From: Convolutriloba macropyga
Taxonomy: Eukaryota
Reading direction: 5' to 3'
Assembly (NCBI RefSeq): GCF_964194025.1
Contig: NC_134478.1
Span: 30,380,001 to 30,444,000, forward strand
Length of the DNA stretch: 64,000 nucleotides
Numbering within the stretch: position 1 is the stretch's first letter; every line of letters starts with the position of its first letter. Below are positions 44,860 to 64,000 of this stretch, in pieces. Under the pieces are notes generated by a model. It saw only the letters and a list, made by a program, of their open reading frames with translations, ran no database searches and was not told where the DNA came from. The position numbers were made by a program, and so were the translations under genes.

Positions 44860-44934
44860 TAGGGTTAGAACCCCGACCTCCTGAGTCCGGTTCCTTCCTC
44901 GACAGAGGCATTAACCACAACACTATCAGGGCCT
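44860..44934 (-). mobile_element. Possible tRNA-derived SINE head
   Basis: Minus strand GGCCCTGA-TAGTGTTGTGG (A-box-like) ... GGGGTTCTAACCC (B-box-like); no full cloverleaf. Confidence 0.3.
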
Positions 44935-45049
44935 TGTCCTCGTTTCTCTAAAATTTGCTTCTCTTTTGCAAAACTATTTCAGAGTGAAATGTTGTTGTTG
45001 TTGGGGATTTACAGTTTTCACTGAAGGGATTTTCGTCCCAGTCGTCGTC

Positions 45050-47856
45050 TTAGAAAATTGTCCTATTATTTCTGCAGATCTGACAGTCACAGCATAGATG
45101 CCAGCTACAGATGTTATTTTCGTCGAATCGCTCGTTTACAAACTTCCACGTGAAAATTAAAACTCGATTTTTAGGGCCTTTTTTCGTATTAAATTCAATG
45201 TATTTTTCTATTCGATTTGCTAGTCTGAATGTACGGAAAAAGAAATAATTTTTAGCCTTTTCAGTTCTGGTTTTCGGGAGCTTGAATAAATCATTTGTTC
45301 TCCCTTTTTCTGAATTTTGTTTCAGCATTGGTAAAAAGCTATCGTCTTCTGTCAATTTCGATAAAAGTAGAATGTCATTTAGTTGCATGAACATTGGTAG
45401 TGGTAGTATGTTAAGAAGTCTCAGTTGATTTGGATACGGTATGACTTTTTGTCCAAGGACCCATTTGACTACTTTCTTTTGAAATCTTTCAAGCTGTTGT
45501 AGCTCACCTCGGTTCGGATTTGTGCATGCAGAGCCATATAAGAGTACTGGCAAAATTAGTGACTTGTAGAGTCCGAGCTTGATCTCCTGTCTTACTTGAA
45601 GAGCTGTGTTTCGTCGAAGTAGGTAGAGTACTTTGTTCGCTTTTTTCAGTCGCTCTTCGATGTGTGTCTTCCACGTCAGGTCATGGGAAACATAGATGCC
45701 GAGATCTTTGATGACTTTGGATGACTCTAGTTTAGTGCCCATAAGCTCGTAATTTTCTGTTTGACCTCTTATGCTCAGCTTTGCACATTTGTCCATGGCT
45801 ATTTTCATTTTATTTTTGTTAACACACTGTTCAATACCAATGAGATCGTTTTGAACTTGCCAAAACGTTTTCTTCACTGCAAGAATTTTTACGTCATCCG
45901 CGAAGATAAATGGGTCAGAGAAAACTAACACATCAGGTAGGTCATTGATGAATATGCAAAACAGGAGTGGTCCGAGAAGAGAACCTTGGGGTACCCCACT
46001 TGTTACATCTAAAGTTTCCGATCTTGTGTTGTCTACCCGAATGAATTGTTTCCTATTGTCTAAGTAGTCAATGATAATTTCTAATAGGCAACCTCCCACT
46101 CTAATATTTGCAAGTTTTTGTACAAGCTCAAAATGCGGCACTTTGTCGAAAGCTTTGGAGAAATCTGTGTAGAATGCTACAATTTCGGTGCTTGATTCGT
46201 TATCGAGTGCGTCGTGAATTGATTTCAAGAGGGATAGCATATTTGTATTAACTGTTCGCTTTTTAACAAATCCATGTTGGTGTTCTGTTAGGAATTTTTC
46301 GAAGTTAGCGTATAAAGCTGAACAAACGCATTTCTCAAAAACTTTAGTGTCAATGTCTAAAAGAGACTGGTCGGTAATTTTCTACTTTCTGTCTGTCATC
46401 TTTTTTGTAGATTGGTGTCACAGCTGCAATTTTCCAGGAGTTTGGGATTTTTCTCAGTCGTTTTATCTGCTTGAAAAATACGTTTAAATTCTTACTTGTT
46501 TCGCGTGCTGTACGTTGGAAAAATGCAGGCGGTATGCCATTTGGGCCTCGCGACTTTGTGGCATCTAGCGAAAGAAGTATTTCTTAGATTGCTTTCTTTG
46601 AGATTTCGAAGTTTGTAATTTCAGGATTTCTCAATTTTACATCTTGTATACTGAAAGGAATTTTGGGTGAGAACACTGAGTGACTTGCTCTTGCATTTTT
46701 GTGCTCTGTTGATTTTCTTTGATTAGTAATTTTGGAAGGCTGGGTGATTTTTTCAGGCTTTTCAAGTGTTTGAAGATTGTACCGGTATTTCTTGCACGCA
46801 TGATTTTCTCCTGATATTCAATCCTGTCCAGTTCCGATGATTCTATCAATTGGTTTTCAAGTTTAAGAACTTCTTGTTTTTGATAACTAGTGGGTTTTTC
46901 GGATAAGAGTCGTTTTTGGGTTTAGAGTCTCTTCATGTTGTAAGAAGTGAAACTTGATATCCAGGGAGGTAGACTTTGTCGGTGTCTAGTTCTTTTGGGG
47001 ACGTGGACCTCGAATATTTGATCCATGTTCTGGTAAAATTCTTCGCACATGTTGTTTATGTTAGTGAAGCAAACTGGTTTGAAGGGTTCAGTACTTAAAA
47101 TATTATTTATGCTTTCGTAGTCAGCGTTTCCGAAACTTCTAAAATTTTCAAGAGTTTCTTTGGCGTCTTGGCGTGGACATTCTAATGTTAACTGGATTGA
47201 TTTATGATCCGAGCAGTTGTAAATTGAGGAAAATTTCTTGTCGAGATGTGCCACCAAATTACAATTTTTGTAAAATGCTACATCTAGAGTGTTCTGCACA
47301 GAGGTGGGAAGTTTATGATTTGTCTGTATAGGGATTCCTCAAACAATTCAATGACTTCGTGTTCTTCTTCATTTGTACTTGCTAGAGTTTTCCAGTTAAC
47401 ATCAGGACAGTTTATATCCCCACATATAATGGTCATTTTTGATTTAGGAATGATTTTAAGGAGTTTTGGGAAATCGTTAGCCTCGTAACGGTACGGGCTA
47501 GTTCTTGGGGGGTTGTAAAAGGCACAAATAAAAATTTAGTTCTCAGCTAATTGTATTTTGCAGACAAGACTAGAATCCGGTTGATCAGAAATGACTCTTT
47601 CGGAGATGAAGGAGTTCTTTATTGCTATGAGGGCGCCTCCGTGGGTATTTTTGTCTTGATCCATTTGTCTGTCTTGTCGGTAGATATAATAGTCATTTAA
47701 AAATAGTTCAGATGATGGAATGTTATCATTGAGCCAAGTTTCACAGAGACATATAACGTTGTAGTCTGAGTTTATTACAGCATTTGCAAACTTAATTCTC
47801 CTCTCTACGTTCACAAGGCTCCTTACGTTTAGTTGCAGAATGTTAACAAAACCTAG
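45050..47856 (-). pseudogene. LINE copy 1 ORF2: AP endonuclease + reverse transcriptase, interrupted
   Basis: ILQLNVRSL, CLCETWL, HGGALIA, SDH (APE); YTDFSKAFDKV, GVPQGSLLGP, FADD (RT); C-terminal CSWHLCCDCQIC. Confidence 0.95.
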
Positions 47857-48745
47857 TCAGTTTGACTTGGTTCCTACGGAGGCAATCTCCACTTTCGCAC
47901 CATCGTTGAATAGTTCTAAATTTCGAATTTTTAGTTTATCTCGAGGAACTCCCTCTGTCAACAGTTCTCTTCTCTTTTTCAGAATCAGGTTTTCTTTGAG
48001 GGCATCTTCTTTGCTGAGAGCTGGTAGCAAGTAAATATTTCTCTTTGCTAATTCCTCTCGATGTTCAATACTTTTGGCTAAGGCTAGCCTGGCTTCGTGT
48101 TCGTTAGCAACCGTTACTAAAAGAGTTCTTGGTTTCTTCCGTTCTCTCTTGAATTCACCTAGTCGTTTGAGTTCCTTCACTTCAGGCCTAACGCCTATTT
48201 CACTCAGTATTTCATTTACTTCGTCAGTTGTGGGGACAAGATTTTCAGCTTCTGTTTTGTTATGATCTTCAGGGATCCCTTGTATTCTGAAAATTTGTTT
48301 GATGTTGTCGACGCCTTTCTCTATCTTAATTAACTTTCCAAGTTTCCTATCTGTCTCCTGTGTGGATTCCACGGAGACCACGCAGCATACGTTTCATCAA
48401 CTTTTTCACAAGTTGTTTTGATGGCGGTTTCTATTTTTCTGTCTACAAGCTCATTCAATCTCTTTTCCATGTTTTTGAGTTGATTGCTAAAGTCCAATTT
48501 TTCTATCTTCTCAGTCATGTTCGCCATTGTTCTGCATCTTATGAATTTATCTCGCTCGTTTTTGTCCACGCATTTATTGCAGAGAAGCATAATGTTGTTT
48601 CCGAGATCTATTATCCCGTTGAGGGAGGCCACGGAAAGTCCTGTGCAAATTGTCGTCATGTGTATATGACAGTTGCAGGCAACACATGTATATGTTTTCT
48701 CTTGTGCCTGTATTGGCTTGTTACAGGTCTTACAATTTTTCCCAT
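47857..48745 (-). pseudogene. LINE copy 1 ORF1: PHD finger, coiled coil and RRM-like C-terminal region; two frameshifts
   Basis: CKTC..CVAC..H..C..CNKC; FRIQGIPE..KRLG..KPRTLLV; ATG at 48745 inferred from homology to copy 2 (MGRNCKTC). Confidence 0.85.
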
Positions 48746-49021
48746 TTGTTTCATAAGCTATGATCAATTCCAATTGAACTTAATCAGCAGGAATCTCACA
48801 GAACTTACTACGTTGACTTAAAATTTTGATCAAGACCAATTGTACTTAATCAACAGGAATTTCACAAAATAATTTGATGAAGACTTAAATTTTTGATCGA
48901 CTCCAACTGAACTGAATCAATAGGATTTGCACAAAAATTTGGAATAAAAATTGCGATAGGGCTTAACAAAAGCTAAACGATTTTGCTTAAATTGACGATT
49001 GGGACTGAAAACTGGTTTTGA

Positions 49022-49672
49022 TCAATTCCAATTGAATTCAATCAATAGGAATTTACAAAACCAACCTAGTGCTAGATTTACTAAAATTTTGGCTGCGTTT
49101 CGTTTCTTTTGCTTTTTCTTTCGTTGCTGTTGAGACGGGCTGTGTTTCTTTTTGATAAACGCTTTTAGATTGTCGCCGTGATTTCGTACAATAGTTAGGG
49201 TTTTGATTTCGAGGTGTGGTGCAAGATGTAGTTGGCTGTAGCTGCGAACAAGTTCTTTGTCCTTTTGCTTTCGCCTCGAGAGAAGGTCCTTTACGATGTG
49301 TAGAACAGGTATTCCTGTTCCCTTCAGCTCTTTGTAAACGTCTGGTGCCCCTTCTTTTACGCAGTAAACTATTCCAACTACTTTATGCTTGATATTCTTG
49401 ATTTCGTTCACAAGTTGTTCTGGGGTAAGTGGCTTTCTGGGGTCTTTGCGGGGGCTTGCCACAGAGTTATTGACTAGATCGTGCCAAATAATCAACTGCT
49501 CGTTTTTCGGTATCAATCGAAGTCGTTTTTGAATAATTTTAGACTTATCTTGAGCTCCTCGGTGAAGATTGTATCCTGGCTTCTTGATCACTTGTCTGGA
49601 TAATCGCTTCTTGATGTTTGTCCACCTCTCCAAGGAATGGTGAAGAGAACTTGCTCCAATAACAATTACCAT
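49022..49672 (-). CDS. LINE copy 1 ORF0: SGNH/GDSL-hydrolase-like protein with basic C-terminal tail, 216 aa, open
   Basis: VIVIGASSL (block I-like), PG (II), IIWHDLVNNS (III-like), SQLHL (V-like); homologous frames occupy the same position in copies 2 and 3. Confidence 0.7.
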   Translation of the reverse strand: MVIVIGASSLHHSLERWTNIKKRLSRQVIKKPGYNLHRGAQDKSKIIQKRLRLIPKNEQLIIWHDLVNNSVASPRKDPRKPLTPEQLVNEIKNIKHKVVGIVYCVKEGAPDVYKELKGTGIPVLHIVKDLLSRRKQKDKELVRSYSQLHLAPHLEIKTLTIVRNHGDNLKAFIKKKHSPSQQQRKKKQKKRNAAKILVNLALGWFCKFLLIEFNWN

Positions 49673-50906
49673 TTACAAACAAGGGCCACCACAGCTGCCC
49701 TGAACAAACATTATAACCTATTTAAAGCACTCGAAAGCACTCAAAATTCAAGATTAAATGCGTGAAAAAGTCACTCTAGAAGTCAAAGATTATTCTAGAA
49801 AAACGCAAAAATGGTCAAGCAAAAATTTTGCATGGAAAAGACACACGTTTACGATAATTGCTTCTTATTCGAGAGCAATCAATAATAAAGGGCTTCAGTA
49901 AACCTGAAACGATGTCAAGGTTATTTTTTGTCTCATCGTGGAGTTTCAGATAATAATATATTTGGATATAGATTTTTCGCTCTTGACATTCTGACTGACG
50001 AAGTATAATAATTGCGACGCATTTAATTTAATGGTGGATATATGTCGTTATCAAAGTTGGTCGGTGGGCAACTAATTATTTTGGTGACATTCTCAAAGTA
50101 GTCATTACAAATTAAAAAATTATCAATTAGAGGTTGTTTTGTTACGGAGTTCAAAACAACATCATTTTGTCGACTCGTAACTTAATCTTATCCCGACATC
50201 TGGTTTTATAGCTTGGGAATCCCCGATTTGCCCTCTTAATTGAGATTCAAAAGTGAGCGCAAAGGTGATTTGTTTTAAACTTCTGTGCTCACTCAGGAGT
50301 TTAAAATCTAATCGAAAGTAAATAGAGCCCACTTGTTACCTCAAAGACATTACAAATTGAGATTTTGCTTGAAAACGGGATAGATAATCATTTTTTGGTG
50401 AAATTAGTTGTTCACTTAAGTTTTTTCACACTTAATAAATTGCATTAGAGTTGATCTCGTGTCTGTCATATCTTTTGTTTGAGTGTTAGTTTTACTTAAA
50501 TGAAACCGTTTGATCTCATAGGTATAAACCCCGTTTTTGTAAAGACATCTGTCCTTTTAAAAGAATCCATAGAGGTTATATAACAATATAAACTATTCTT
50601 TAAAAGCAATATATCTGTGCAGTAATTGGTAGTCCATTGACATAAGATTGCGGAAAAACGGTTTCGGAACATTAGGTGTCATTGCACATTAGCGAGCAGT
50701 CTTGTTTCAACTGCTCACGTTTCAGTTCAAGAATAATGATGCTCAAGTTGATAAACGCATCTAAACAGCAGATTACCTAACTCAGACACTTGTCCATTGT
50801 AGGCTCAAAGGATAATATATAGCTTCAATAATGCTACAAAATACAGTATTGCAAAAATTATTTTTTGGTGGGTAGCGGGGGTCTATCCCAATATACCAAT
50901 AGCTTA

Positions 50907-53900
50907 GTTGTTGTTGTTGTTGTTGGGGATTCGCAGCGGGTTTGCTGCAGGGCTGATTTATGCCCAGTCGTCAGTTGTTAAAATAAAGTCCATTTATTTC
51001 TGCATACATGGCAGTCGCAAAAGGTTTGCCAAGTGCAGAATCGTTTATTGACAAACTCCCACATTAGGTTTATCAGTCTCTTCTTGAGTCTGTAAGGTCT
51101 ACTGAATTCAATATAATTCTCTAATCGGTTTGCGAGTCTGCAGTTTCGGAAGGTGAATTCACTTCTGGCTTTTCCGTTCTTTTTTTTTGTAGCCGAAAGA
51201 CTTCCTTTGTGCGTCCATTGGCGCTGGTGAGGTCAGGTAGTTCAATGCAGTATGAGCTTTCATTCATGACTTTCGCAAGAAGAAGTAGGTCGTTCACTTG
51301 GAGAAACATAGGTAAGGGGAGAATGTTGAGCAGCCAAAGTTGGCTGATATAATTCACTCCTTTGTTTCCCGTGATCCATTTCACTGCTTTCTTCTGAAAG
51401 CGTTCGTGGTTTTGTAGCTCGTTTCGTGATGGGTTTATGCACGTGAAGCCGTACAGCAAAACGGGTAGGCTTAGTGATTTGTAAAGCCCAAGTTTGATGA
51501 GTGGTTTAACTTGTACTGCGACGTTTTGTCTTGGGAGGTACAGTACTTTGGTAGCTTTCCCGAGTCGCTCTTCTATATGTTTACTCCAGCTCAGGTCATC
51601 TTTGATGAGAATTCCCAAGTCTTTTACTGTATCTGCATTTGCCAAATCTTCACCCATAATATCGAAATTTCGTTTTTTCCCTCGAAATGTTATCTGAGCA
51701 CATTTGTCCAGTGCCAACTTCATCTTGTTTGATCTGACCCACATTGCAATGCTGTCTAGGTCTTCCTGGATGGTCCAATGATCTTTTCCAATCGCGAGGA
51801 TTTTCAGGTCGTCTGCGAAGATGAATGGGTCTGAGAACTTCAGCGCGTCGGGTAAGTCGTTGATGAAGATGCAAAACAGGAGCGGGCCTAGTAGTGAGCC
51901 CTGAGGCACTCCACTAGTAAAGTCTCAAACACCGGAAAATGTATTATCGATTCTGACGAACTGTTTCCGGTTGCTTAGGTAGTCCATGAGAACTTGTAGG
52001 AGACATCCTCCTACCCTAATATATTTGCAACCTTTTTTAATAGCTCGAAATGAGGTACTTTATCGAAGGCTTTCGAGAAGTTCGTGTAGAATGCAATAAC
52101 TTCTGAGTTTGGATCGTTATCGAGTGCGTCTTGGATTTTTTTCAGGAAAATAATCATGTTTGTGAAAACAAACCGATTTTTAACAAATCCATGCTGGTGC
52201 TTTGTCAAGAAAGAGGCAAAGTGGTCGTAAAGAGCCATGTAGATGCATTTTTTCAGGATTTTACTTTCAATGTCCAGTAGGGACAGTGGACGGTAGTTTT
52301 GTACGTAGCGTCTGTCTCCCTTCTTCTGGATTGGGGTCACAGCGGCTGTCTTTAATGTGTCAGGTATCCTTCTTTGCTTCTTTATCACCTTTAGAAGCTT
52401 ATTTAGGACGACCGAAATTTGTCGTGACGTGAAGAAGGCCGGAGGGAGTCCATTTGGGTCCCTGGATTTAGTAATGTCCAATTCGGACACGAAGGAATGT
52501 ATGGTTTTAAACGATATGTTGAAGTTTGTCAATGTAGGCTTTTTCGTTCCGATGTCAGAAAAGCTGAATGGTTGTTTTGGAGAGAAAACTGAATGGAAGA
52601 ACTCGTTTATAATGTCGACTTGTTCGTGGACAATGGTGCTCACTTTATCGCCACTCACGACTTGCATCGGAAGGGTGGGAGATTTATTGAGACTTTTCAG
52701 ATGTTTGAATATAACGTCGGTGTTTCTTGTGGACAGTAAATTCTCCTGGTAGTCTTTCCCTTCTCCCTCTGCTGACTCGGTCACCAAGTTCTCCAGCTTC
52801 ATGACTGCTGCTTTCCGATAACTCGTTGGTTTCCTTTCAAGGAGCCTTTTCTGCGTTTTCAGTCTTTTCATAAGATTTGACGTGAATGCAGAGATCCATC
52901 GAGGGAGGCTTTGGCGATGTCTGGTTCTTCGAGATACATATGTCTCAACCACTTTGTCGACATATTGGTAGAACTTTTCACACATTTTGTTGACGTTTGT
53001 ATGGCAAATAAGTTGGAATGAGTTCTCTTTAAGAAAGTTATTCATTCCATCGTAGTCAGCTTTCCCAAAACTCCTGAGTGATTGGAGTACGGGTTTCGGT
53101 TAAGTTACTGGGCATTCGATCGAAAGATGGATTGCATCGTGATCAGTGTAGTCGTATGTCCTAGGGAAGTACTGATCCTTTTCGGCAAAGAGAAAACAGT
53201 TGCGATAGAAGGCCACTTCAAGGTTGTTATTTGAACAGGTCGGAAAGTCAATGGCTTGTCTGAACAGAGCTTCGTCTAAGATTTCGATGATTTCGATTTC
53301 TTCTTCATTAGAGCTGCTCGTTGTTTTCCAGTTTGCATCCGGGAAATTCAGGTCGCCACAGATTAGGACCGGTTTTGACTTTGGGATGGTTTTCAGGAGT
53401 TTTTGGAAATCGTTGATATTATATCGTATGCACTGCCTTTTGGTGGGTTTTAGATTGAACAGATTATCACTTCAGATCTGTCTAGTTGAAGTTTGCAGGC
53501 TAGGCATGAGTCGGGAAGATCCGCATTGATCTTCTCAGAGTTTAGAGAGTTTTTCCACTTCTATGAGGCTACCGCCGTGGGCAATTTTATCTCCCAAGAG
53601 TGTACGGTCGCTTCAATATATGTTGTAGTCATTTATATGTAGTTCGGGGTCGCTGATCAATTCGTTCAGCCAGGTTTTGCAGAGACATATGACAGTGTAG
53701 TCCGCTATTTGGACTGCATTGGCAAGTTTTGCTCTTCGTTCGATGTTTACTTCGTGTGTTGAGGAAGAATGTTGAGGAAACCTAGTCATGTAGACTCGGT
53801 TTTCTCAGATTCTAAGTGAACTTTCTTCCCGTCATTAAACAGCTCCAAATTTCGAATTCGCAACTTCTCTCGAGGAACGTCTTGATCGAGTAGTTGACGT

Positions 53901-55470
53901 CTTGTTTTCAGAATGAGGTTTTCCTTCATTGCATCTTCTCGCGAGAGAGCAGGCAGGAAGTAAATGTTTCGCTTAGTGAGATCTTCCCTGTGTTCATGAC
54001 TTTTCGCCACGGTCAGGCGTGCATGATGTTCGTTCGCTACCATGACCAGAAGGGGTCTAGGTTTCTTTCGCTCGGGTTCGAATTTGCCAAGTCTTTTGAA
54101 CTCGAGAACATGTGGTTCAGCTCCAATCGTAAACAGTATTTCGTTCAGTTCAGAGTTCGTTGGGACAAAATTTTTGGATTTAGATTTCGATGGGTCTTCT
54201 TTTAACCCTTGGATTCTGAAACTTGGGTTGATATTGTGATTTGACTTTTGGGCCTCCGCATTTTGTGCTCTTTTGGTTTTCCCGCTCGTGGTTTTGTCCA
54301 CGGCGACGACAGCTGCGTATTTTTTCTCCCCTTTGTCGCAAGTGGTCGTCATTGCTTCTCCAATTTTAGAATCGACTAGTTCCGTTAGTCGCTTTTCCAT
54401 GTTCGTTAACTTCTCACCTACGTCAAGGCTTTCCAGTTTCTCAGAGACACTTTCTAGCGCGCGTCCTCTGATGAAATTATCTCACTCGTTGTTTTCTATG
54501 CAGGTGTTGCACAGTAGCATCGCATTCATTCCCAATTCTATTATTCCATTAATAGCAGCAGGTGAAAGGGCGGTACATTCAGTGGTTAGATGCATGTGGG
54601 TGTTACAAGATACGCAGAAGTAAGTTTTCTCTTGGTTCGGTATACCTCGCTTGCATGTTTTGCAGTTTCTACCCATGACGTGAGATGTTCTATTTCAGTT
54701 GCTAGGTTCATTTTGATGTGTACCAATAAAATTAATTACTAGGTACTTACAAAAAAAACTTAGAACTGACGACTGGTATGAAGTTGTAGACTGGTTTTGA
54801 TCAGTGCCAAGGAACTTAATCACTAGGACCTCACAAAACCAGGAACAACTTCAAAAATGAAGCACTTACTTAGTACTTCTTCGCTTGCTCTTTCTTCTTC
54901 CTTCGTTGGGATTGCGACGGGCTTTGTCGTTTCTTGTTGATTGCTGACAAATTGCTGTCGTGTTTCTCGACAATAGAGCGGGTTTTAATTCCAAGGACTG
55001 GTTTTTGATGGAGTTTTCTGTATTCGGTTATCAGTTGTCGATCTTTCTGTTTTTGTCTCGACAGAAGGTCACGAACGACGTTTAGGGTGGGAATTTCTGT
55101 TGCCTTTAGCTCCTTGTAAACGTTGGGAGCTCCCGCTTGTTCACAAAAAACTATTCCAACAACTTTTCAATTTAACTTCTTTATTTTGGTGACTAGCTGT
55201 TCCGCAGTTAGGGGGCTTCTGGGGTCAGACTTCGGATTGGTCGTGGAGTTGTTTATCAAATCGTGCCAGAGGACGACTTCCGCCGATTTGGGAAGTCGAT
55301 TGATTTGATGAGAAACAATCTTCAACTTATCTTTCGCTTGAGGATGCAGGTTTTAGCCACACTTCGTGATGACTTCTGGAAGTTGTCGTCTCTCTCGGAT
55401 ATTTCTTCCCAGGGCTAGCTCCAAAGATATATACCATTTAGAAAGGGCTACCACGGCTGCCCTGATGAGA
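50907..55470 (-). mobile_element. LINE copy 2 (related family), near full length, degenerate
   Basis: (AAC)n tail 50907-50925; ORF2 50978-53785 (FSKAFDKV, PQGSLLGP, FADD, CTWQTFCDCHVC); ORF1 53786-54676 (PHD); ORF0 remnant ~54870-55437. Confidence 0.92.
54870..55437 (-). pseudogene. LINE copy 2 ORF0 remnant
   Basis: MVYIFGAS.., VVLWHDLINNS, KVVGIVFC..GAPNVYKELK, DLLSRQKQKD, KLH and basic tail; colinear with copy 1 ORF0, with stops. Confidence 0.8.
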
Positions 55471-55500
55471 CATTTAACCTGAAACTATTTAATAATATTA

Positions 55501-55688
55501 AGTGGTAATATAACGTTCAGCCTGAACTCTAGTGGTAATATAACGTTCAGCCTGAACCCCCATCATGGTCAACTTACCATAACGGGGCTTCACTTTCGTG
55601 GCGTGGGCATAACTGTAAAGACCCTGATTGCCTCTAGTCGCTCGATGCTGTCTACGATGGGAAAGACCACCCCAACAACAAACAAACA
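55501..55688 (+). mobile_element. Short retroposed fragment (SINE or heavily truncated LINE) with a 30-bp tandem duplication and LINE-type tail
   Basis: AGTGGTAATATAACGTTCAGCCTGAAC twice; TGGGCATAA..CCCTG and terminal CCCCAACAACAAACAAACA resemble the LINE 3' ends. Confidence 0.4.
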
Positions 55689-55699
55689 CAAGTAATTTG

Positions 55700-56380
55700 C
55701 CCAAAAAAATCTCGGAGTCGTAATGTCTCGAAATCTCTCTTGGAGCGCAAACTGCCAACGTAGAACCAAAGCGTGGAAAGCCTTCTACACACTCAAACGA
55801 AATGTTTCGAGCAGAACCTCAATGGAAACGAAACTGAACGTGTACATAGGATACGTAGTACCCGTACTCACTTACGCCTCCCAAGTCTGGTACCCTTCGA
55901 AGACGGACATGAAATCGATCGAGAATATCCAGCACAAGGCCACGAAGTGGATATGCGGTGGAAAGGACGAATACAATCAAAGACTCGAAACACTGAAAAT
56001 GCTCCCACTCTCCATGTACATGGAAATGCACGACGTCCTCTATCTCCTTTCAATCCTAGAAGGCAATTATTACGTCCCCGAAGACAAACTGCCAAAGCGA
56101 AACGAAAATAAAAACAAGACAAAAGCAGGAATTTGAACTCCCCAAACACCGACTACAGAAATCAGAAATTCAGAGCCGCAAAGGTATACAACCTCATCAG
56201 AAGAACAACGGAGAAGCCAATGACGAAGAAATTTCTGACACAGATGTACCAAAACTACTTCCACAGAAGCTACAACGAACTCGACAGCTGCACCAGGAGA
56301 CTTCTATGCAACTGTGAAATCTGCAATCCAATGAAAAAACTCGTGCCAAACGAAAACTGAAGGGTTCTACACCCATGGGC
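55700..56380 (+). mobile_element. 5'-truncated LINE (ORF2 C-terminus + start of 3' UTR), runs into a gap
   Basis: VVPVLTYASQVW..IENIQHKATKWI..LKMLPL..HDVL; C-terminal CNCEIC; 3' hairpin GGGT-TCTAC-ACCC. Confidence 0.85.
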
Positions 56381-56521
56381 NNNNNNNNNNNNNNNNNNNN
56401 NNNNNNNNNNNNNNNNNNNNNNNNNNNNNNNNNNNNNNNNNNNNNNNNNNNNNNNNNNNNNNNNNNNNNNNNNNNNNNNNNNNNNNNNNNNNNNNNNNNN
56501 NNNNNNNNNNNNNNNNNNNNN
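56381..56521. other. Assembly gap
   Basis: N run. Confidence 1.
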
Positions 56522-56699
56522 TAATCCAGAAAATCTTTTCAGTAGAGAAAGAAAATTAACAAGAGCAAGTTTTGGCCAAAACAGCTTTCTGGACTGTGAT
56601 GGCATCTGTCTCCTTGCTTACTGTTAAGAATTGTTGTTTGGAAGCCCTAAATCTGAGTATTAAAGTAGCTTTAAATTAACTTCCTGACACTGGTCAACA

Positions 56700-59600
56700 G
56701 CAAGCGCATCATATGCAAATTACAAAAAGGGACGTTTTTTCATGTTCGCGCAACCATACGCATAAAAAACATCTTCATTGTAATATCAATCAGAGCATAC
56801 GAGTTATGGCAAGTTCATCCGGAGTCAAGAACAGAACTCCTGATTTTAAATACTGTTCTGAGAAACGGTCACAACCTGCTACAACTCGTCAAAAAGGTTC
56901 ACAGAAGCCAAACAAAAGGCAGAAGGATAGGATCAAGAAACGTCAACTCGCCGAATCGGAACCCTAACTGTAAGTTTTATTTATTAATGAATCCGAAGGT
57001 TTACCTCGTAACTGCAAAAGTATTCAGTTTTTTGGAAAAAACTGAATACTTCTGTTCTCTCTCTCAAAGTTCACTTATCTAGTGAATCCGGAGGCATCGT
57101 CTCGGAATCGCAGAGCACTGAACACAAATGAGAGACCAATTGTCCCCCTACTCGCCATCCCGTCTCGCATCCATATACAAAAAATGCCACCACGCGAAAC
57201 TATCTGCTCAGGCTGTGACTGCGAAATCAGCAACAGGGAAGCTGTTTTCAATTGCATTGGGCGCAGAAACTCAATGCATACGAAACCCGATTGTGTGGGA
57301 ATCTGCGAAAAAGCCATCTTTGGTTTAATGGAAATTAGTCAAAATCTTCTGAAATTCTGCAACATTTGTGTCAGATATAATCAAAAATACAAGACCCTCT
57401 ATAAAACTGTCAGCAACCAAGATCCTGTGGGAGCCGACACCTTCGCTGAAAAAGTGAAACAGGGTATGGAGTCAATCGAAGAAAAACGCAGAGAGAAGAT
57501 AAGCTGTTCTTAGCGTTGTCGATGAAATTAGGGAAAAGCTGCCTGCCTTTGGATCGGAAATGAAGAAGACACCGGTTGCAGAAGAAGTCCCTCACATGAA
57601 ACAGAAAGAGGTTGTCAAAAAGCCAACCGCTAAGGAATTGTTCGACGGCATTCGACTCAGTGGAATCCCGGAATCGGAATCAGAAAACGCAAGAAAGAGA
57701 CTGGAACACGACTCATAAGAAGAAAAAGCTCTCCTAAGCTTTCTTCAACAGGACTGCCCAATCACTGATCTGGTGGGAAAAGGTACTTTTGACAAAGAGG
57801 AAACAATAAACCCTTATTATCAAACGGACAAATGAACAACAAAAGAGACCTGTCTTACTTTCAGCTCGAAAGCCAGCTACCTACGAACATAAGGTCTATT
57901 TGAGCCGGGAGCCGAGCCAGGAGGAACAACTTCTAGAGAATGCCGCATTGAAAATGAAACGTCAGCTGCTGGACAAAGGAAAGCAACCCATCGTGCTACG
58001 AATACGAAACTTGCAGTTGCAAGAAAAAAGGCACTGAGTGGAAAATTGTAGAAATCGAAGAGGGCACCAGCTCCCAATGACTACGATCAACACAGACAAA
58101 ACAACCTACTCACGTTCAACAACAGAAGCCTAGTTGACTTTAAGTTGAAGCCTAGTAAACCCGATGATGACCTATTTCGTCCCAATTTTGTAATCTACAG
58201 GAAAAACAAGCGCAGCGACAACAACCACAAACGTGGTGGTGTCTTAATAGCAGTAAAAAATCACATAAACAGCAGTATTTTTAAATTGGAGTCCGACGCG
58301 GAAAGTATTACTGTTAACCTCAACACCGTGACTGGGTCAGTCTTGATCAACTGCACCTAAAATCCCCTCGAAAACAGTTTTATCGTTTTTCGTTTAACTG
58401 CCTCAAAACTTTCCTTAAAAAACGCAACGAGCAAAATGTGACTGCTTCGGCAATTACCGGGGACATCATTTTCCAACATACGAATTGGGAAAGTTTGACA
58501 TCAGAAAACACTAATGAAACGACCATACTTGACTTCCTAGAACATTCCAACTTTGAACAAATTCTCCCATGCCAAAATTCACGTAGTCTCGACGTTCTAC
58601 TAACGCAAGATGGTGAACGGACGGAACACTCGGCTATCGACAAAAAATTGGAAGGATTCTACTCCTTGTCTGATCATCATCTGTTGAAGACAAAAATGCG
58701 GGACTACTGCTAAATTTTATTTCACCTTACACAAAATAGAATAGAACTCCATTAACAAGCTGATTGACGAAATTGATTTCAACCCCTACTGCTATAGTAA
58801 TGTTGATGAGCTCGTGCGACAGTGGTATGTCTGGATACGCGAAATAATCGACAAATGTGTCCCTCGCATAACTAAGCGTAGATCAACTCTTTCCGCGTGG
58901 ATCTCGCCAAGCACATCTCATCACATGAAAGTTTTAGTGACGACCAAGAAAAATTATGAAGACAAACCAAACCTTCCTTTTCTGTTAAAAACTAAACGCA
59001 AAGAAACAGCACTGAAAACTGAGATTGAAAATGAACCAGCCTGTTTTGAAGAAAATTTCTTTCGCAGCAGGTGAAAGTCAGATATACAGAAATATCTCAA
59101 GTCCCTACACAAAATCAAAGTACTCCCTCAAGATATATATCTCGCAATTGTTGATGATCATAACCAAATCAAAGTCGCCTGCACATCTGGAGATCAAAAA
59201 AAGTGAACTATTCAATAATTTCTTTTCCAACGTTCTCAACGTGGAAGGTCAAATGTCTCTGGACCCAGTGTACAAGAAAAAAAAACTAATTTTTATCAAA
59301 CTCTCGGAGGATGAAATCAAGGAAGCTATTTCAAATCTGGATGCAGACAAAATTTGTGGACCAGATAATTTTTGTAACAGCTTCCTGAAAAAACTCTTGA
59401 ACCTCTCAAAAACGCTTCTCCTTGTCTTTCAAGCGTGAACCAACAAAGGATCTTTCCCATCCCAATAGAAAATTATCGAAGTGACACCCATCTATAAGGA
59501 GAATGACAAAACCGATAAAAGTCAGTACAAGCCGATTCGCCTGCTCACAAACGTGTCCAAAGCTTTTGAAAGAGTCATTTTCCAGCACTTGTATCCAATC

Positions 59601-60843
59601 ATTGAAGCACAGCTTGATAAAAGACAATTTGGTTTTCGACAGAGACGCTCGGCAGTTCTGCAGCTCCTTCTGTACATAGAAGAAGTGGATGAAGTCTTTG
59701 ACGCAGCAAAGAGTGAACGCATATATGCCCTCTATGTGGAATTCAAAAAAACTTTCGACAAAGTTGCCCATGAAAACCACTCGAAAAGCTACAAGAACTC
59801 AGCCTTGTTGGAAAACTGTTCAATCTTTTAAGCACCTACGTTATAGAACATAAACAATGTGCCAAGGTAGACAACTACAGGTCAAGTTTTAGGAATGTGA
59901 CCAGTGGTGCTTCCCAAGGGCTCATCCTAGGGCCTCTCCTCCTCCTTGCCTACGTTAACAACGTTTTCAGAGCCGTTGATAATTACTCACGGTATGGCTA
60001 TGCTGACGACTTTAAAGTCATCATGGAGAGCAGAACTGACGCAAATTGGCTTGTTGAAAAGGTTCAAATCTGGAGTAAAGACAACCACATGTCCACTAAC
60101 GTCAAGAAAAGCAAAATTTTTTGTCTGAAAGGAAGCTTCTCATGCGAATTCGGCGATTCACTCGAAATGGTGCCGCAACAAAAAGACCCTGGAGTAATCC
60201 AATCTAGAAATCTCTCCTATAGTGATAATTGCTCTCGAAAAATAACCAAGGCCTGGCAATCCTTTTGGTTATTGAAAAGAAACTGTTGACTTAAAGCCAA
60301 TCCCGTCACAAAACTGAATGCGTACGATGATTACGTAATTGCCTGTTTTGACCTACAATTCTCAGGTCTGGTAAGCAAAACCGCTGCATGGATATGCGGA
60401 AAAGATGCCGACTACAAACAGCGACTACTAAAACTCAAGATACTGCCTGTATCGTTGTATGTCGAACTTCACGATATTCTACTCTTCAACACAATATGCC
60501 AAGACAAAAATGCTTTATATTCGAACGCTTAACCTAAATCCAGATCAACAGAAATTTGGCAAAACTGAATCTCAGAAGGTCCTTTTAACAGGTTGAAGAA
60601 GACCGATACAATTTTTTGGACACGGACTGCGCGACTTATGAACATCTTAAACTAGCACATATGTGAGAATGAGTTAAAAAATCAAGACTAACTAAGATGT
60701 ATCACGAATTCTTTGATAGGAGCTACGATGAGATGGAACTCTTTACCTCGCGAAATCTCTGTCTCTCTGTGGCTCCTGTAACTCTGCCAAGAAAATCGTG
60801 CCAGCTGAAAACTGAAGGGTGAAATTTCACCCCTGGTCTTGTC
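56700..60843 (+). mobile_element. LINE copy 3 (more distant family), heavily degenerate; ORF0 remnant, ORF1 57184-58080, ORF2 58081-~60815
   Basis: PHD CSGC..C..H..C..CNIC; GIRLSGIPES; RGGVLIAVK, LSDH, QFGFRQRRS, FKKTFDKV, SGASQGLILGP, YADD. Confidence 0.9.
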
Positions 60844-61007
60844 NNNNNNNNNNNNNNNNNNNNNNNNNNNNNNNNNNNNNNNNNNNNNNNNNNNNNNNNN
60901 NNNNNNNNNNNNNNNNNNNNNNNNNNNNNNNNNNNNNNNNNNNNNNNNNNNNNNNNNNNNNNNNNNNNNNNNNNNNNNNNNNNNNNNNNNNNNNNNNNNN
61001 NNNNNNN
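60844..61007. other. Assembly gap
   Basis: N run. Confidence 1.
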
Positions 61008-62825
61008 TGGGGTAAGCGATCCGCGGATTACGGTTTTGCTCGGAGATTTCCCATTTCTGTTCCCAGGGCTCAGATAAAGCTTGTTTTCGTTAGCCAAGAT
61101 GTTAATCTAGCCAAAACTAAAAATGGCCCCCTTTGAAAAGCATTTCTTTGGTTTTTATTAGGTTTCAAAAAATTAATTAATTTTTGAAAAAACTGCACTT
61201 TTCTCTCAATTTTACATAAATAAAGTTACTTTTTCTCATCGTAGATTGATAGTCACGCTTGAGAGCTTTCCGGAACAATTTTTTTAATCATTCTAGCTCT
61301 CTTATTTGTTGTTTTATTGACCGAGCGGAGTAGGGTGACTTCCGCGGCCAAACAGTAAGGGAAATTGAAAACTCTGTTTCTTCATCAAAAATTAATATTT
61401 TTGATTTTTTCTTTCAATTTCGGTGCTGTATGACTAAGTTCTGGCATTTTTGGTCTTGTAGTGCAGTTGCGTTTAGTGCCTGGAAACGACCTAATTTTTA
61501 TGTCATAAAATGAGAGTGACCCAAACGAGTGACCACTGAACTGCAAGAAAAGTGGAATGAGGCAAAAACTCAAAAATGAGTCCTGGAGTCTGAAATTTCG
61601 CATGTCGACTAAAAATAGTCATACAAGACAGGTAACTTTTTGCTGGATTCTAATATCTATTAAAAACCGAAAAAAAAGTTTTTAAAATTCTCGACTTGAA
61701 TTTGGGTACGAATTTTTTATAATTTTTGGCCGGATGCGAATATCTGGAAGACGGCTAATTTTAATGAGCTCAGCAAAATATTTATGGAACCTCAATTTCA
61801 GAACGCTATCCGGGTTTAAAAGGGCCGATTTTTCGATTCAAATAGCATAAGAAAAAATGAACAACTATTTCGAACACCAGAAGCAATTTCCGACGAGACG
61901 CAGCAAAAATAAGGCCATTCGAAATTTATGCTACTGAGGATTAGGCTTCAAAATGTTTTGAAATAAACATGTTAAGAGTCAGCGATCTCGATATTTTCAG
62001 CTCCCAAATCTAAAAATAGAGTTCTGAAATTTATGTCAAACTCTTGTCAAGCAGCAGAAAATTATTAAAGTTGATAGGTCGTTTTTGCAACTTTTTTTTT
62101 CTTTCTAATGTTTTCAGTTTGCTTGTTGGGTCACAAGGCTTACCGAAAACAATTTTTATACACAACTTTTCACTAAAAAAACCGTTTTGTTGTTGTTTTC
62201 AGTTGATTTTGATTTTTTGTGAAAAACTTGAATTTGGGTACATCGCAGTTTGTTGAAGTCAAACTGAAGAAGATGAGATCCATTGAAGGAGAACAACATA
62301 AACAAAAATGATCATTTTCATGCAAGAAAGTTTTTCAGTACCTTTGCAATATGGTTGTTTTCCCCCAGTTTATTTTTTGAAGCAGAAAGAACAATAACTT
62401 CGAAAAAAAAAGGAAGCAAAAAAATCTGAAACAAAAAAAAATAAGAGTTCAAGGTACAGAAAAACGAATTTGAGAACGGTTTCTGATGTCATTTCTGGAA
62501 CACTGTTTATTGTTACAATTCAGTTTTATGGAGAAAAAAAGACTTACGTTGATGAAACTGCACATATCTTAATAATACAAGGGGAAATCTTTGAAAAACC
62601 AAAAAACTAGAATTTGGGTTCGAAAAATAAATGCCAAAGTGGCCCTATTGGTCTGGTCGCCAGGTTTTTCTATTAAACATAAAAATAATTGTCATACCAA
62701 TTCCTCGAACTCATCATGGATGTTCGTACGGAAAAATCCAGCCTAAATTATTTAAAGACATTAAAAATTAGCCCAAAATTTTGGTATGAGTAGAAAGCTT
62801 TTGAGTGCTTTCAAATTTTTTTCGA

Positions 62826-64000
62826 AGTCCATTGCCTTATAAGGGATCAATTACAGGGGAAAAAGTGGTCTAAAATAACGGACATACGTTTTGTTTGATA
62901 CAGGGGTAAGAAAAAATGATTTCTACGGGGCCAGAGCCTTCAAATCGAGACGAACCCCTATTTTTTATTTCAAATTGATCTTTTTTGCTTTAAGTCAAAG
63001 CCTTTGGCCCCTCCATTTTTTTCAAAACAACTCCTCATCCACGGGATAATTAACAATTCTGCCTGTGAACGGCTTGGAGAAGATTGTTATCACAATATAA
63101 TAAAAATTAAGTGATTTAGAGTTGCAAAATCCGGAGTTTTTTTAAAAAAATTTTGCGGATTTCTCTAATTCCATCGCCTGTTTAGGGATTAATTACCGGA
63201 AACAAACATGGGTTTAAAATAACGGACACAAAATGAGATTTCTCGGGGGGTCAAAAAAATAGGGGATCATCCCGAGTTGAAGGCCAGAGCCCTCAACTCG
63301 AGATGATCTCCTGTTTTTTTTTTTCAAATTGATTTTTTTGCTTAAAGTCAAAGTCTTTGGCCGCTCCATTTTTTTCAAAACACCTCTTCATCCTTGCGAT
63401 AGTTAAAAAATCTGTCTGTGAACGGCTTGGAGAAGATTGGTATCACAATATAATAAAAATTAAGTGTTTTAGAGTTGCGAAATCCGGACTTTTTGAAAAA
63501 TTTTTTGCGGATTTCAATTTTCTCTTAGTCCATCGCCTGTTTTGGGATTAATTACCGGAAACAAACATGCGCTTAAAAAAACGGACATAAAGTGGGATTT
63601 CTCGCGGGGTCAAATAAAAATAAGGGATCATTCCGAGTTGAGGGCCAGAGCCCTCAACTCGAGATGACCCCCTATTTTTTTTTCAAATTGATTTTTTTTG
63701 CTTAAAGTCAAAGTCTTTGGCCGCTCCATTTTTTTCAAAACAACTCCTCATCCACGGGTTAGTTAACAATTCTGCCTGTGAACGGCTTGGAGAAGATTGT
63801 TATCACAATATAATAAAAAATAAGTGATTTAGAGTTGCAAAATCCGGAGTTTTTTTTAAAAAAATTTGCGGATTTCAATTTTCTCTAATTCCATCGCCTG
63901 TTTAAGATTAATTACCGGAAACAAACATGGGTTTAAAATAACGGACACAAAATGAGATTTCTCGGGGGGTCAAAAAAATAGGGGATCATCCCGAGTTGAA
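62826..64000 (+). repeat. ~360-bp tandem satellite (>=3.3 units, continues past window)
   Basis: CCAT(C/T)GCCT unit marker at 62829, 63171, 63530 and 63891. Confidence 0.93.

Follow-up and report, generated by a model that had tools for sequence, protein, structure and literature searches.

An in-frame UGA-CUA junction between ORF1 and ORF2 in a clade of CR1-like LINEs: a candidate signal for programmed stop-codon readthrough

We analysed a window of 64,000 nucleotides (nt) from Convolutriloba macropyga (NC_134478.1, 30,380,001-30,444,000 of the forward strand; all feature positions given below are window positions), which carries one decayed copy of each of three families of long interspersed nuclear elements (LINEs). 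In all three window copies, open reading frame 1 (ORF1) ends with TGA, followed by CTA. Our comparison of this junction suggests that the ORF2 protein (ORF2p), a putative apurinic/apyrimidinic endonuclease (APE) joined to a reverse transcriptase (RT), is probably made as an ORF1-ORF2 fusion by programmed readthrough of the UGA-CUA stop codon. A conserved in-frame UGA, an invariant CUA, coding sequence that continues immediately after the stop and a dispensable AUG together form the pattern that programmed readthrough predicts. A gag-pol-like fusion of this type had been proposed in the original prediction, made from the window itself, and the comparative data support it: the in-frame UGA-CUA is found clade-wide, the sequence after the stop appears to be coding, and no usable AUG is present in 5 of 11 lineages.

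The junction in the window and in the host genome

Copy 1 lies on the minus strand and reads AAC TGA CTA GGT TTT GTT AAC ATT CTG CAA CTA AAC GTA AGG at the ORF1/ORF2 junction (TGA at 47859-47857); its translation passes through the junction in a single frame (...VGTKSN*LGFVNILQLNVRSL...). In copy 2, also on the minus strand, TGA (53788-53786) is followed by CTA GGT TTC CTC AAC ATT, and copy 3, on the plus strand, has CAA TGA CTA C with the TGA at 58078-58080. The original prediction had these letters and positions right. All three copies are decayed by internal stops and frameshifts, so the in-frame state had to be verified on other copies. These were drawn from the 1.18-Gb eukaryotic assembly that holds the window, in which a PF14529 search gave at least 150 places. 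The comparison of junctions was made between individual copies, with neither a consensus nor a repaired element, and no copy was designated active.

Family 1, to which copy 1 belongs, is young: across the junction its 30 copies share 96-99% identity. All of them (30/30) have TGA and 27/30 have TGA-CTA-G, and the better-preserved copies have 302 open ORF1 codons (counted from stop to stop, with Met as codon 7), the TGA, and then 530 to 792 open ORF2 codons, all in one frame. Copies of family 2 are 84-94% identical, and 19 of 22 have TGA-CTA-G; the commonest state is in frame and reads ...TCA TGA CTA GGT TTC CTC AAC ATT CTT CAA CTC AAC ACA CGA AGT... Family 3 is old (12 copies, 79-87% identity), and most of its copies are in frame, with TCC CAA TGA CTA CGA TCA ACC CAG ACA AAA CTC AAC CTA CTC ACG TTC AAC GTC AGA. 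The downstream frameshift described for copy 3 is real in the window copy, where it results from a private 2-nt deletion, but does not extend to the family. In the commonest copy state of families 1 and 2 and the majority state of family 3, ORF1 and ORF2 share a frame with a lone TGA between them. The in-frame joining first read from the window copies therefore stands, although it is the better-preserved copies elsewhere in the genome that show it. Three family 3 copies (L070, L077 and L080) read TGA CAA in place of TGA CTA; two of them, L077 and L080, have upstream differences as well and may represent a subfamily.

In decaying genomic copies the hexamer is free to mutate, and ATA, CTT, GTA, CAA, TCA, TGG and TTA were all seen. 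Its constancy in lineage-level sequences, described below, thus reflects selection. Four public runs also bear the sequence, in contigs of unknown kind. Their depth is 15 to 25-fold higher toward the 3' end, a DNA-like profile that is the usual sign of 5'-truncated LINE copies, and these contigs show only that the high-copy majority sequence retains TGA-CTA. Relative to the window, the high-depth contigs have an extra AG at 46361, 22 nt at 46680, G at 47305, G at 48381 and T at 48735; these are the sites of frameshifts private to window copy 1.

The junction across lineages

Further junctions were obtained by an ORF2 protein search, followed by inspection of the encoding contigs in seven independent public assemblies (a Tara Oceans marine metagenome, four from ENA and two Logan run assemblies). 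A lone in-frame TGA was found in 8/8 further junctions from these assemblies. TGA-CTA is present in 7 of the 8 (L082, L083, L084, L085, L086, L087 and L091), plus L092; L093, a visibly decayed copy, has TGA-TTA. L094 was discarded as a junction source, being a 5'-truncated and uninformative copy.

Ten lineages were aligned, and L092, found later, is an 11th that stands outside the alignment. The hexamer TGACTA is invariant in 10/10 aligned lineages, against 31% and 38% identity in the two 30-nt flanks, and L092 likewise has TGA-CTA; the UGA itself is also kept in L092 and L093. The final sense codon of ORF1 varies among the ten. The seventh base is G in five, C in two, T in two and A in one (G in L092), so the conserved motif is UGA-CUA and not UGA-CUAG. 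Of the conservation of UGA-CUAG claimed earlier for divergent elements, the first six bases thus hold in every aligned lineage and in L092, and the G does not, occurring in five of the ten. CTA makes up 16.7% of the Leu codons in these ORF2s, and other nearby Leu codons vary.

ORF1 and ORF2 are in frame in 12/12 informative junctions of the clade, and the insertions and deletions (indels) to either side of the stop are in-frame ones that never disrupt it. The ORF1 tails upstream of the stop are hydrophilic, variable in length and unalignable between lineages; from their sequence, they look like a linker. No second in-frame stop was found across about 6,500 ORF2 codons. The ORF2s themselves terminate at TGA, TAA or TAG (TGA in 4/7), which indicates that UGA is an ordinary stop in the host.

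A tree of ORF2 groups the UGA-CUA lineages as a single clade (support 100/99); its branches are long, reaching 1.5 changes per site, and ORF2 identity falls to 32%. Of the lineages outside it, one carries UGA-GAU in frame, and another a UAG out of frame. The former (L090:763-925; 26% ORF2 identity) has 34 AUG-free codons between the UGA and the endonuclease, and its 3' side shows no stable structure (z +1.3). Stops in frame may predate the CUA motif or be spread more widely than it.

Coding sequence and start codons after the stop

The sequence right after the UGA is, judging from its variation and its modelled fold, translated in the ORF2 frame and part of the enzyme. The Pfam Exo_endo_phos match begins at residue 8 past the stop. 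Modelled with AlphaFold2, the first 240 residues past the stop reach a mean predicted local distance difference test score (pLDDT) of 90.8, with 91 for the first 10 residues, and in the model residues 3-10 (FVNILQLN) form the first beta-strand. The top Foldseek matches of this model are human L1 endonuclease structures, with a template modelling (TM) score of 0.74, and Asn10, Glu39, Asp147, Asn149, Asp217 and His218 are invariant. Between lineages, codons +4 to +8 show 21 synonymous versus 6 non-synonymous differences. The placement of beta-strand 1 at residues 3-10 and the mostly synonymous variation argue that the post-UGA sequence is coding and belongs to the endonuclease.

Start codons are unevenly distributed in this region. 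In families 1, 2 and 3 and in L085 and L087 (5/11 lineages) no AUG precedes the catalytic Asn. In L082, L083, L084 and L092 an AUG lies at codon 9 or 10, within beta-strand 1, and in L086 and L091 it lies at codon 3 or 4 and would yield a complete endonuclease. For copy 1, the first in-frame ATG was said to lie past the NVR and ETW motifs, and this is borne out: it is codon 65 (47664-47662), downstream of both Asn10 and Glu39 of the endonuclease.

Two other ways of supplying an ORF2 start had been named as evidence that would speak against readthrough. A splice acceptor at CTAG|G was ruled out, since the lineages do not conserve its AG; an AUG, by contrast, does occur 3 to 10 codons past the stop in 6 of 11. 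The UAAUG stop-start overlap was found in no lineage of the junction comparison, and the NPGP motif of 2A peptides is absent from all six frames of 8 elements.

Stop-codon readthrough and alternative explanations

UGA followed by CUA or CGG is known as the type II readthrough context (PMC3542737). By itself UGA-CUA yields readthrough of about 1.5%, a level that favourable flanks raise (PMC4132726). In the LINEs, most ribosomes on ORF1 would stop at the UGA and release free ORF1 protein (ORF1p), and in a small fraction the UGA would be decoded by a near-cognate tRNA, aided by the 3' CUA. These ribosomes would stay in frame and produce an ORF1-ORF2 fusion, whose junction would consist of the ORF1 tail, then Trp, Arg or Cys at the UGA, then LGFVNILQLNVR. 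The fusion may join the particle via its ORF1 part, like gammaretroviral Gag-Pol, and readthrough of a few per cent would give much ORF1 protein and little fusion, as with retroviral Gag and Gag-Pol. We infer the occurrence and efficiency of readthrough, and the fusion as the active form, from comparison of sequences. We also lean, somewhat more cautiously, towards a wider proposal: that this entire deep clade of animal LINEs expresses its endonuclease and RT only as a UGA-CUA readthrough fusion, with the leakiness of six bases setting the ORF1p:ORF2p ratio and tethering ORF2p to the ORF1p particle. It would be the first gag-pol-type recoding in animal retrotransposons of the non-LTR (non-long terminal repeat) type.

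Several observations weigh against readthrough. An extended stem-loop that starts about 8 nt 3' of the stop has been proposed for most viral type II sites, and no 3' stem-loop was found in the 10 lineages, where the 90-nt stretch past the stop, scored by minimum free energy against shuffles, gave z from -0.6 to +1.3. UGA-CUA as a working readthrough context in acoels is carried over by analogy from other systems. Characterised LINEs make a separate ORF2p, and the functions of ORF1 have been argued to need separation from it (PMC3708506). The only runs holding the element behave like genomic DNA, and the shared ancestry of the lineages means that our counts are not fully independent. Finally, the AUG shortly after the stop in 6/11 lineages is a difficulty, above all in L086 and L091, where the complete endonuclease it would give means that reinitiation could work in these two.

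Termination-reinitiation or AUG-independent initiation is the alternative that best survives, and we consider it unlikely. The 40S subunit would stay on the RNA after the ORF1 UGA and restart within a few codons at an AUG or non-AUG codon, so that the ORF2 protein is made on its own, a route demonstrated for SART1 and proposed for human L1. The six lineages with a nearby AUG fit this scheme, the short stop-to-start distance being typical of coupled reinitiation, and reviews report that L1 ORF2 translation is AUG-independent and that SART1 uses UAAUG (PMC5972666, PMC5009743). However, reinitiation needs no shared frame, yet every informative junction of the clade is in frame. It also predicts neither UGA over other stops nor an invariant CUA, and CUA is not a near-cognate start codon. 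The AUG is missing in five lineages, and in four others a start there would remove beta-strand 1; the codons upstream of that AUG are conserved at the protein level. Nor was conserved structure found at the junction (90 nt after the stop, 10 lineages), and for reinitiation of the SART1 or calicivirus type, an AUG overlapping or near the stop is not universal.

A second alternative is that the in-frame TGA-CTA has no role and is inherited by descent, with ORF2 reached by internal entry or leaky scanning. All lineages do have a common ancestor, and decayed genomic copies bear the motif simply through descent. This explanation is very improbable across lineages, where six bases are fixed while adjoining positions are saturated and ORF1 tails cannot be aligned, where indels on both sides of the stop have left the frame intact, and where the free mutation of the hexamer in decaying copies makes its constancy a matter of selection. 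That UGA is sense-decoded by rule, as selenocysteine via a selenocysteine insertion sequence (SECIS) or through a variant nuclear code of the host, would suit a stop that is always UGA but is scarcely credible, since a search of six elements against Rfam (E <= 1) found no SECIS (two chance-level matches only, and no other family), no other TGA is in frame within the ORF2s, and four of seven ORF2s terminate at TGA.

Architecture of the element and features of the window

On its sequence features the element is an APE-type LINE and CR1-like, with an upstream ORF0, a putatively PHD-type ORF1, an APE-RT ORF2 and a short 3' untranslated region (UTR) with a tail. Coordinates are given in Table 1. 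ORF2 carries the Pfam domains Exo_endo_phos, Exo_endo_phos_2 and RVT_1; its closest named homologue is a Convolutriloba macropyga protein (85% identity), and the only named distant match is annotated 'X-element'. ORF1 has a Pfam C1_2 match below the cut-off, and its nearest Atlas clusters carry PHD domains. In distant LINE relatives (P0025 and P0027, 26% identity), one ORF holds both APE-RT and, at its N-terminus, a PHD-like finger, which shows that PHD-to-ORF2 fusions occur naturally.

The short 3' UTR has a hairpin-like element and then a (CAA)n microsatellite tail. The same GGGA...TCCC hairpin-like element, followed by AAATCC and (CAA)n, is common to L082, L084 and L085, whose ORF2s are just 51-62% identical to that of family 1. 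This conserved element may be a recognition element for the RT.

ORF0, of about 200 codons, is conserved upstream of ORF1 (window 49022-49672, minus strand; L083:1397-1999; L084:2-496; L092:853-1479), with the motifs IGASSL and WHDLINNS. It has no Pfam match. Foldseek paired its AlphaFold2 model (pLDDT 80.5) only weakly with GDSL lipases and PAF acetylhydrolase (E 4e-3, TM 0.45), and ORF0 may be the esterase module of CR1-like LINEs, present here as a separate ORF.

Table 1. Features of the three LINE copies in the window
Feature	Position	Strand	Evidence or remark
Copy 1 (family 1), ORF1 stop TGA, in frame with ORF2	47857..47859	-	TGA in 30/30 genomic copies of family 1
Copy 1, CTA codon right after the stop	47854..47856	-	CTA in 10/10 aligned lineages; next base G at 47853, lineage-variable
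Copy 1, codons 3-10 past the stop (FVNILQLN), predicted first beta-strand of AP-endonuclease fold, the last being catalytic Asn10	47827..47850	-	AlphaFold2, Foldseek
Copy 1, ORF1, frameshift-decayed near 48381; PHD-like Cys/His finger, helical region, RRM-like part	47860..48779	-	Translation, sub-cut-off Pfam C1_2, Atlas neighbours
Copy 1, ORF2 (AP endonuclease and reverse transcriptase), broken by an internal stop and frameshifts	45050..47856	-	Translation, Pfam
Copy 1, short 3' UTR, GGGA...TCCC hairpin-like element, (CAA)n tail	44991..45049	-	Layout also in L082, L084, L085 and copy 2
Copy 1, conserved upstream ORF0, 216 codons, weak SGNH/GDSL esterase similarity	49022..49672	-	Foldseek of AlphaFold2 model; no Pfam match
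Copy 2 (family 2), TGA CTA junction; private deletions in the window copy just downstream	53783..53788	-	19/22 family copies TGA CTA G
Copy 2, decayed ORF1 (53789-54400) and ORF2 (about 51121-53785)	51121..54400	-	Translation, Pfam
Copy 3 (family 3), TGA CTA junction; window copy missing 2 nt about 28 nt downstream, shifting the frame	58078..58083	+	Family comparison
Copy 3, heavily decayed ORF1 and ORF2 remnants; about 68 nt deleted over the endonuclease ETW region	57082..60700	+	Family comparison

The three families are related but distinct and adjoin within 16 kb (window 44900-60700), with families 1 and 2 on the minus strand and family 3 on the plus strand. Stretches of N (masked or gap) are present at 56381-56521 and 60844-61007. 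At about 62800-64000, identical peptide strings recur every few hundred bases in the six-frame translation, and this part looks like a tandem repeat unit.

Significance

The translation of ORF2 from bicistronic LINE RNA is a long-standing open question, studied only in SART1 (UAAUG coupling), L1 (undefined reinitiation) and elements with 2A peptides. Readthrough would, if true, extend the logic of retroviral gag-pol to non-LTR elements and show that ORF2p functions fused to ORF1p; it would also show that the UGA-CUA context acts in an early-branching bilaterian. Because the six-base signal is conserved and easily mutated, the mechanism is directly testable with simple reporters. It would further give an annotation rule for calling ORF2 in these families, where gene callers start ORF2 at an internal AUG, GTG or TTG and so truncate the endonuclease in the annotation.

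As to whether such a junction had been reported before, which the original prediction could not say, we found no report of readthrough in animal LINEs in the full-text literature, a search outside which subscription papers and Repbase notes fall. The sole precedent found for readthrough in a LINE is the consensus-based suggestion for Group 3 of Paramecium (PMC5405496).

Comparison with known systems

CR1-like LINEs with a PHD and esterase ORF1 (types III and IV; PMC4120745, PMC3905857) resemble the present clade in their APE and RT ORF2, short 3' UTR and microsatellite tail; a PHD-type ORF1 and the weakly supported esterase-like upstream ORF may be further points in common. In the present clade, however, the esterase-like part is a separate ORF0, and the elements are called CR1-like from their architecture. 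The paper on ORF1 types (PMC4120745) is silent on the ORF1-ORF2 junction.

Other LINEs solve the same problem differently. SART1, with its UAAUG stop-start, and human and mouse L1, with unconventional termination-reinitiation, share the bicistronic RNA and an ORF2 translation that depends on ribosomes having translated ORF1 (PMC5972666). In SART1 and L1 a stop-containing spacer lies between the ORFs, or the two differ in frame, and ORF2p is separate; the present clade has no UAAUG. LINEs with 2A (StopGo) sequences, such as L1Tc, Ingi and the sea-urchin and other CR1/L2/Rex1 elements (PMC3708506), also use recoding with upstream functions and ORF2 in one frame, but they require D(V/I)ExNPGP, a motif present in none of the six frames of the elements examined here. 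In Group 3 of the Paramecium germline LINEs, ORF1 and ORF2 also share a frame, and consensus sequences led to a suggestion of readthrough there (PMC5405496). That group is a ciliate-specific clade in a host with UGA as the sole stop codon, and the passages seen give no conserved 3' context or comparative test (PMC5405496), whereas the present clade, with its defined motif, was found in animals and marine samples.

The closest parallels in gene order and signal are viral and vertebrate. In murine leukaemia virus (MLV) gag-pol, as in these LINEs, an ORF with structural or RNA-binding functions is followed, in the same frame and after just one stop, by a polymerase ORF, and a minor fusion is expected to set the ratio of the proteins. 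MLV uses UAG-G with a compact 3' pseudoknot (PMC3542737), whereas the LINEs have UGA-CUA, no detected 3' structure and, as non-LTR elements, no protease to split the fusion. The hexamer itself is shared with the alphavirus nsP3/nsP4 junction (UGA-CUA or UGA-CGG) and with the vertebrate UGA-CUAG genes OPRL1, OPRK1, AQP4, MAPK10 and MDH1, where the six bases are likewise invariant and the seventh is often, but not always, G (PMC4132726). In those systems readthrough adds a replicase extension or a short C-terminal tail, whereas in the LINEs the predicted extension would be the whole endonuclease and reverse transcriptase, of about 945 residues.

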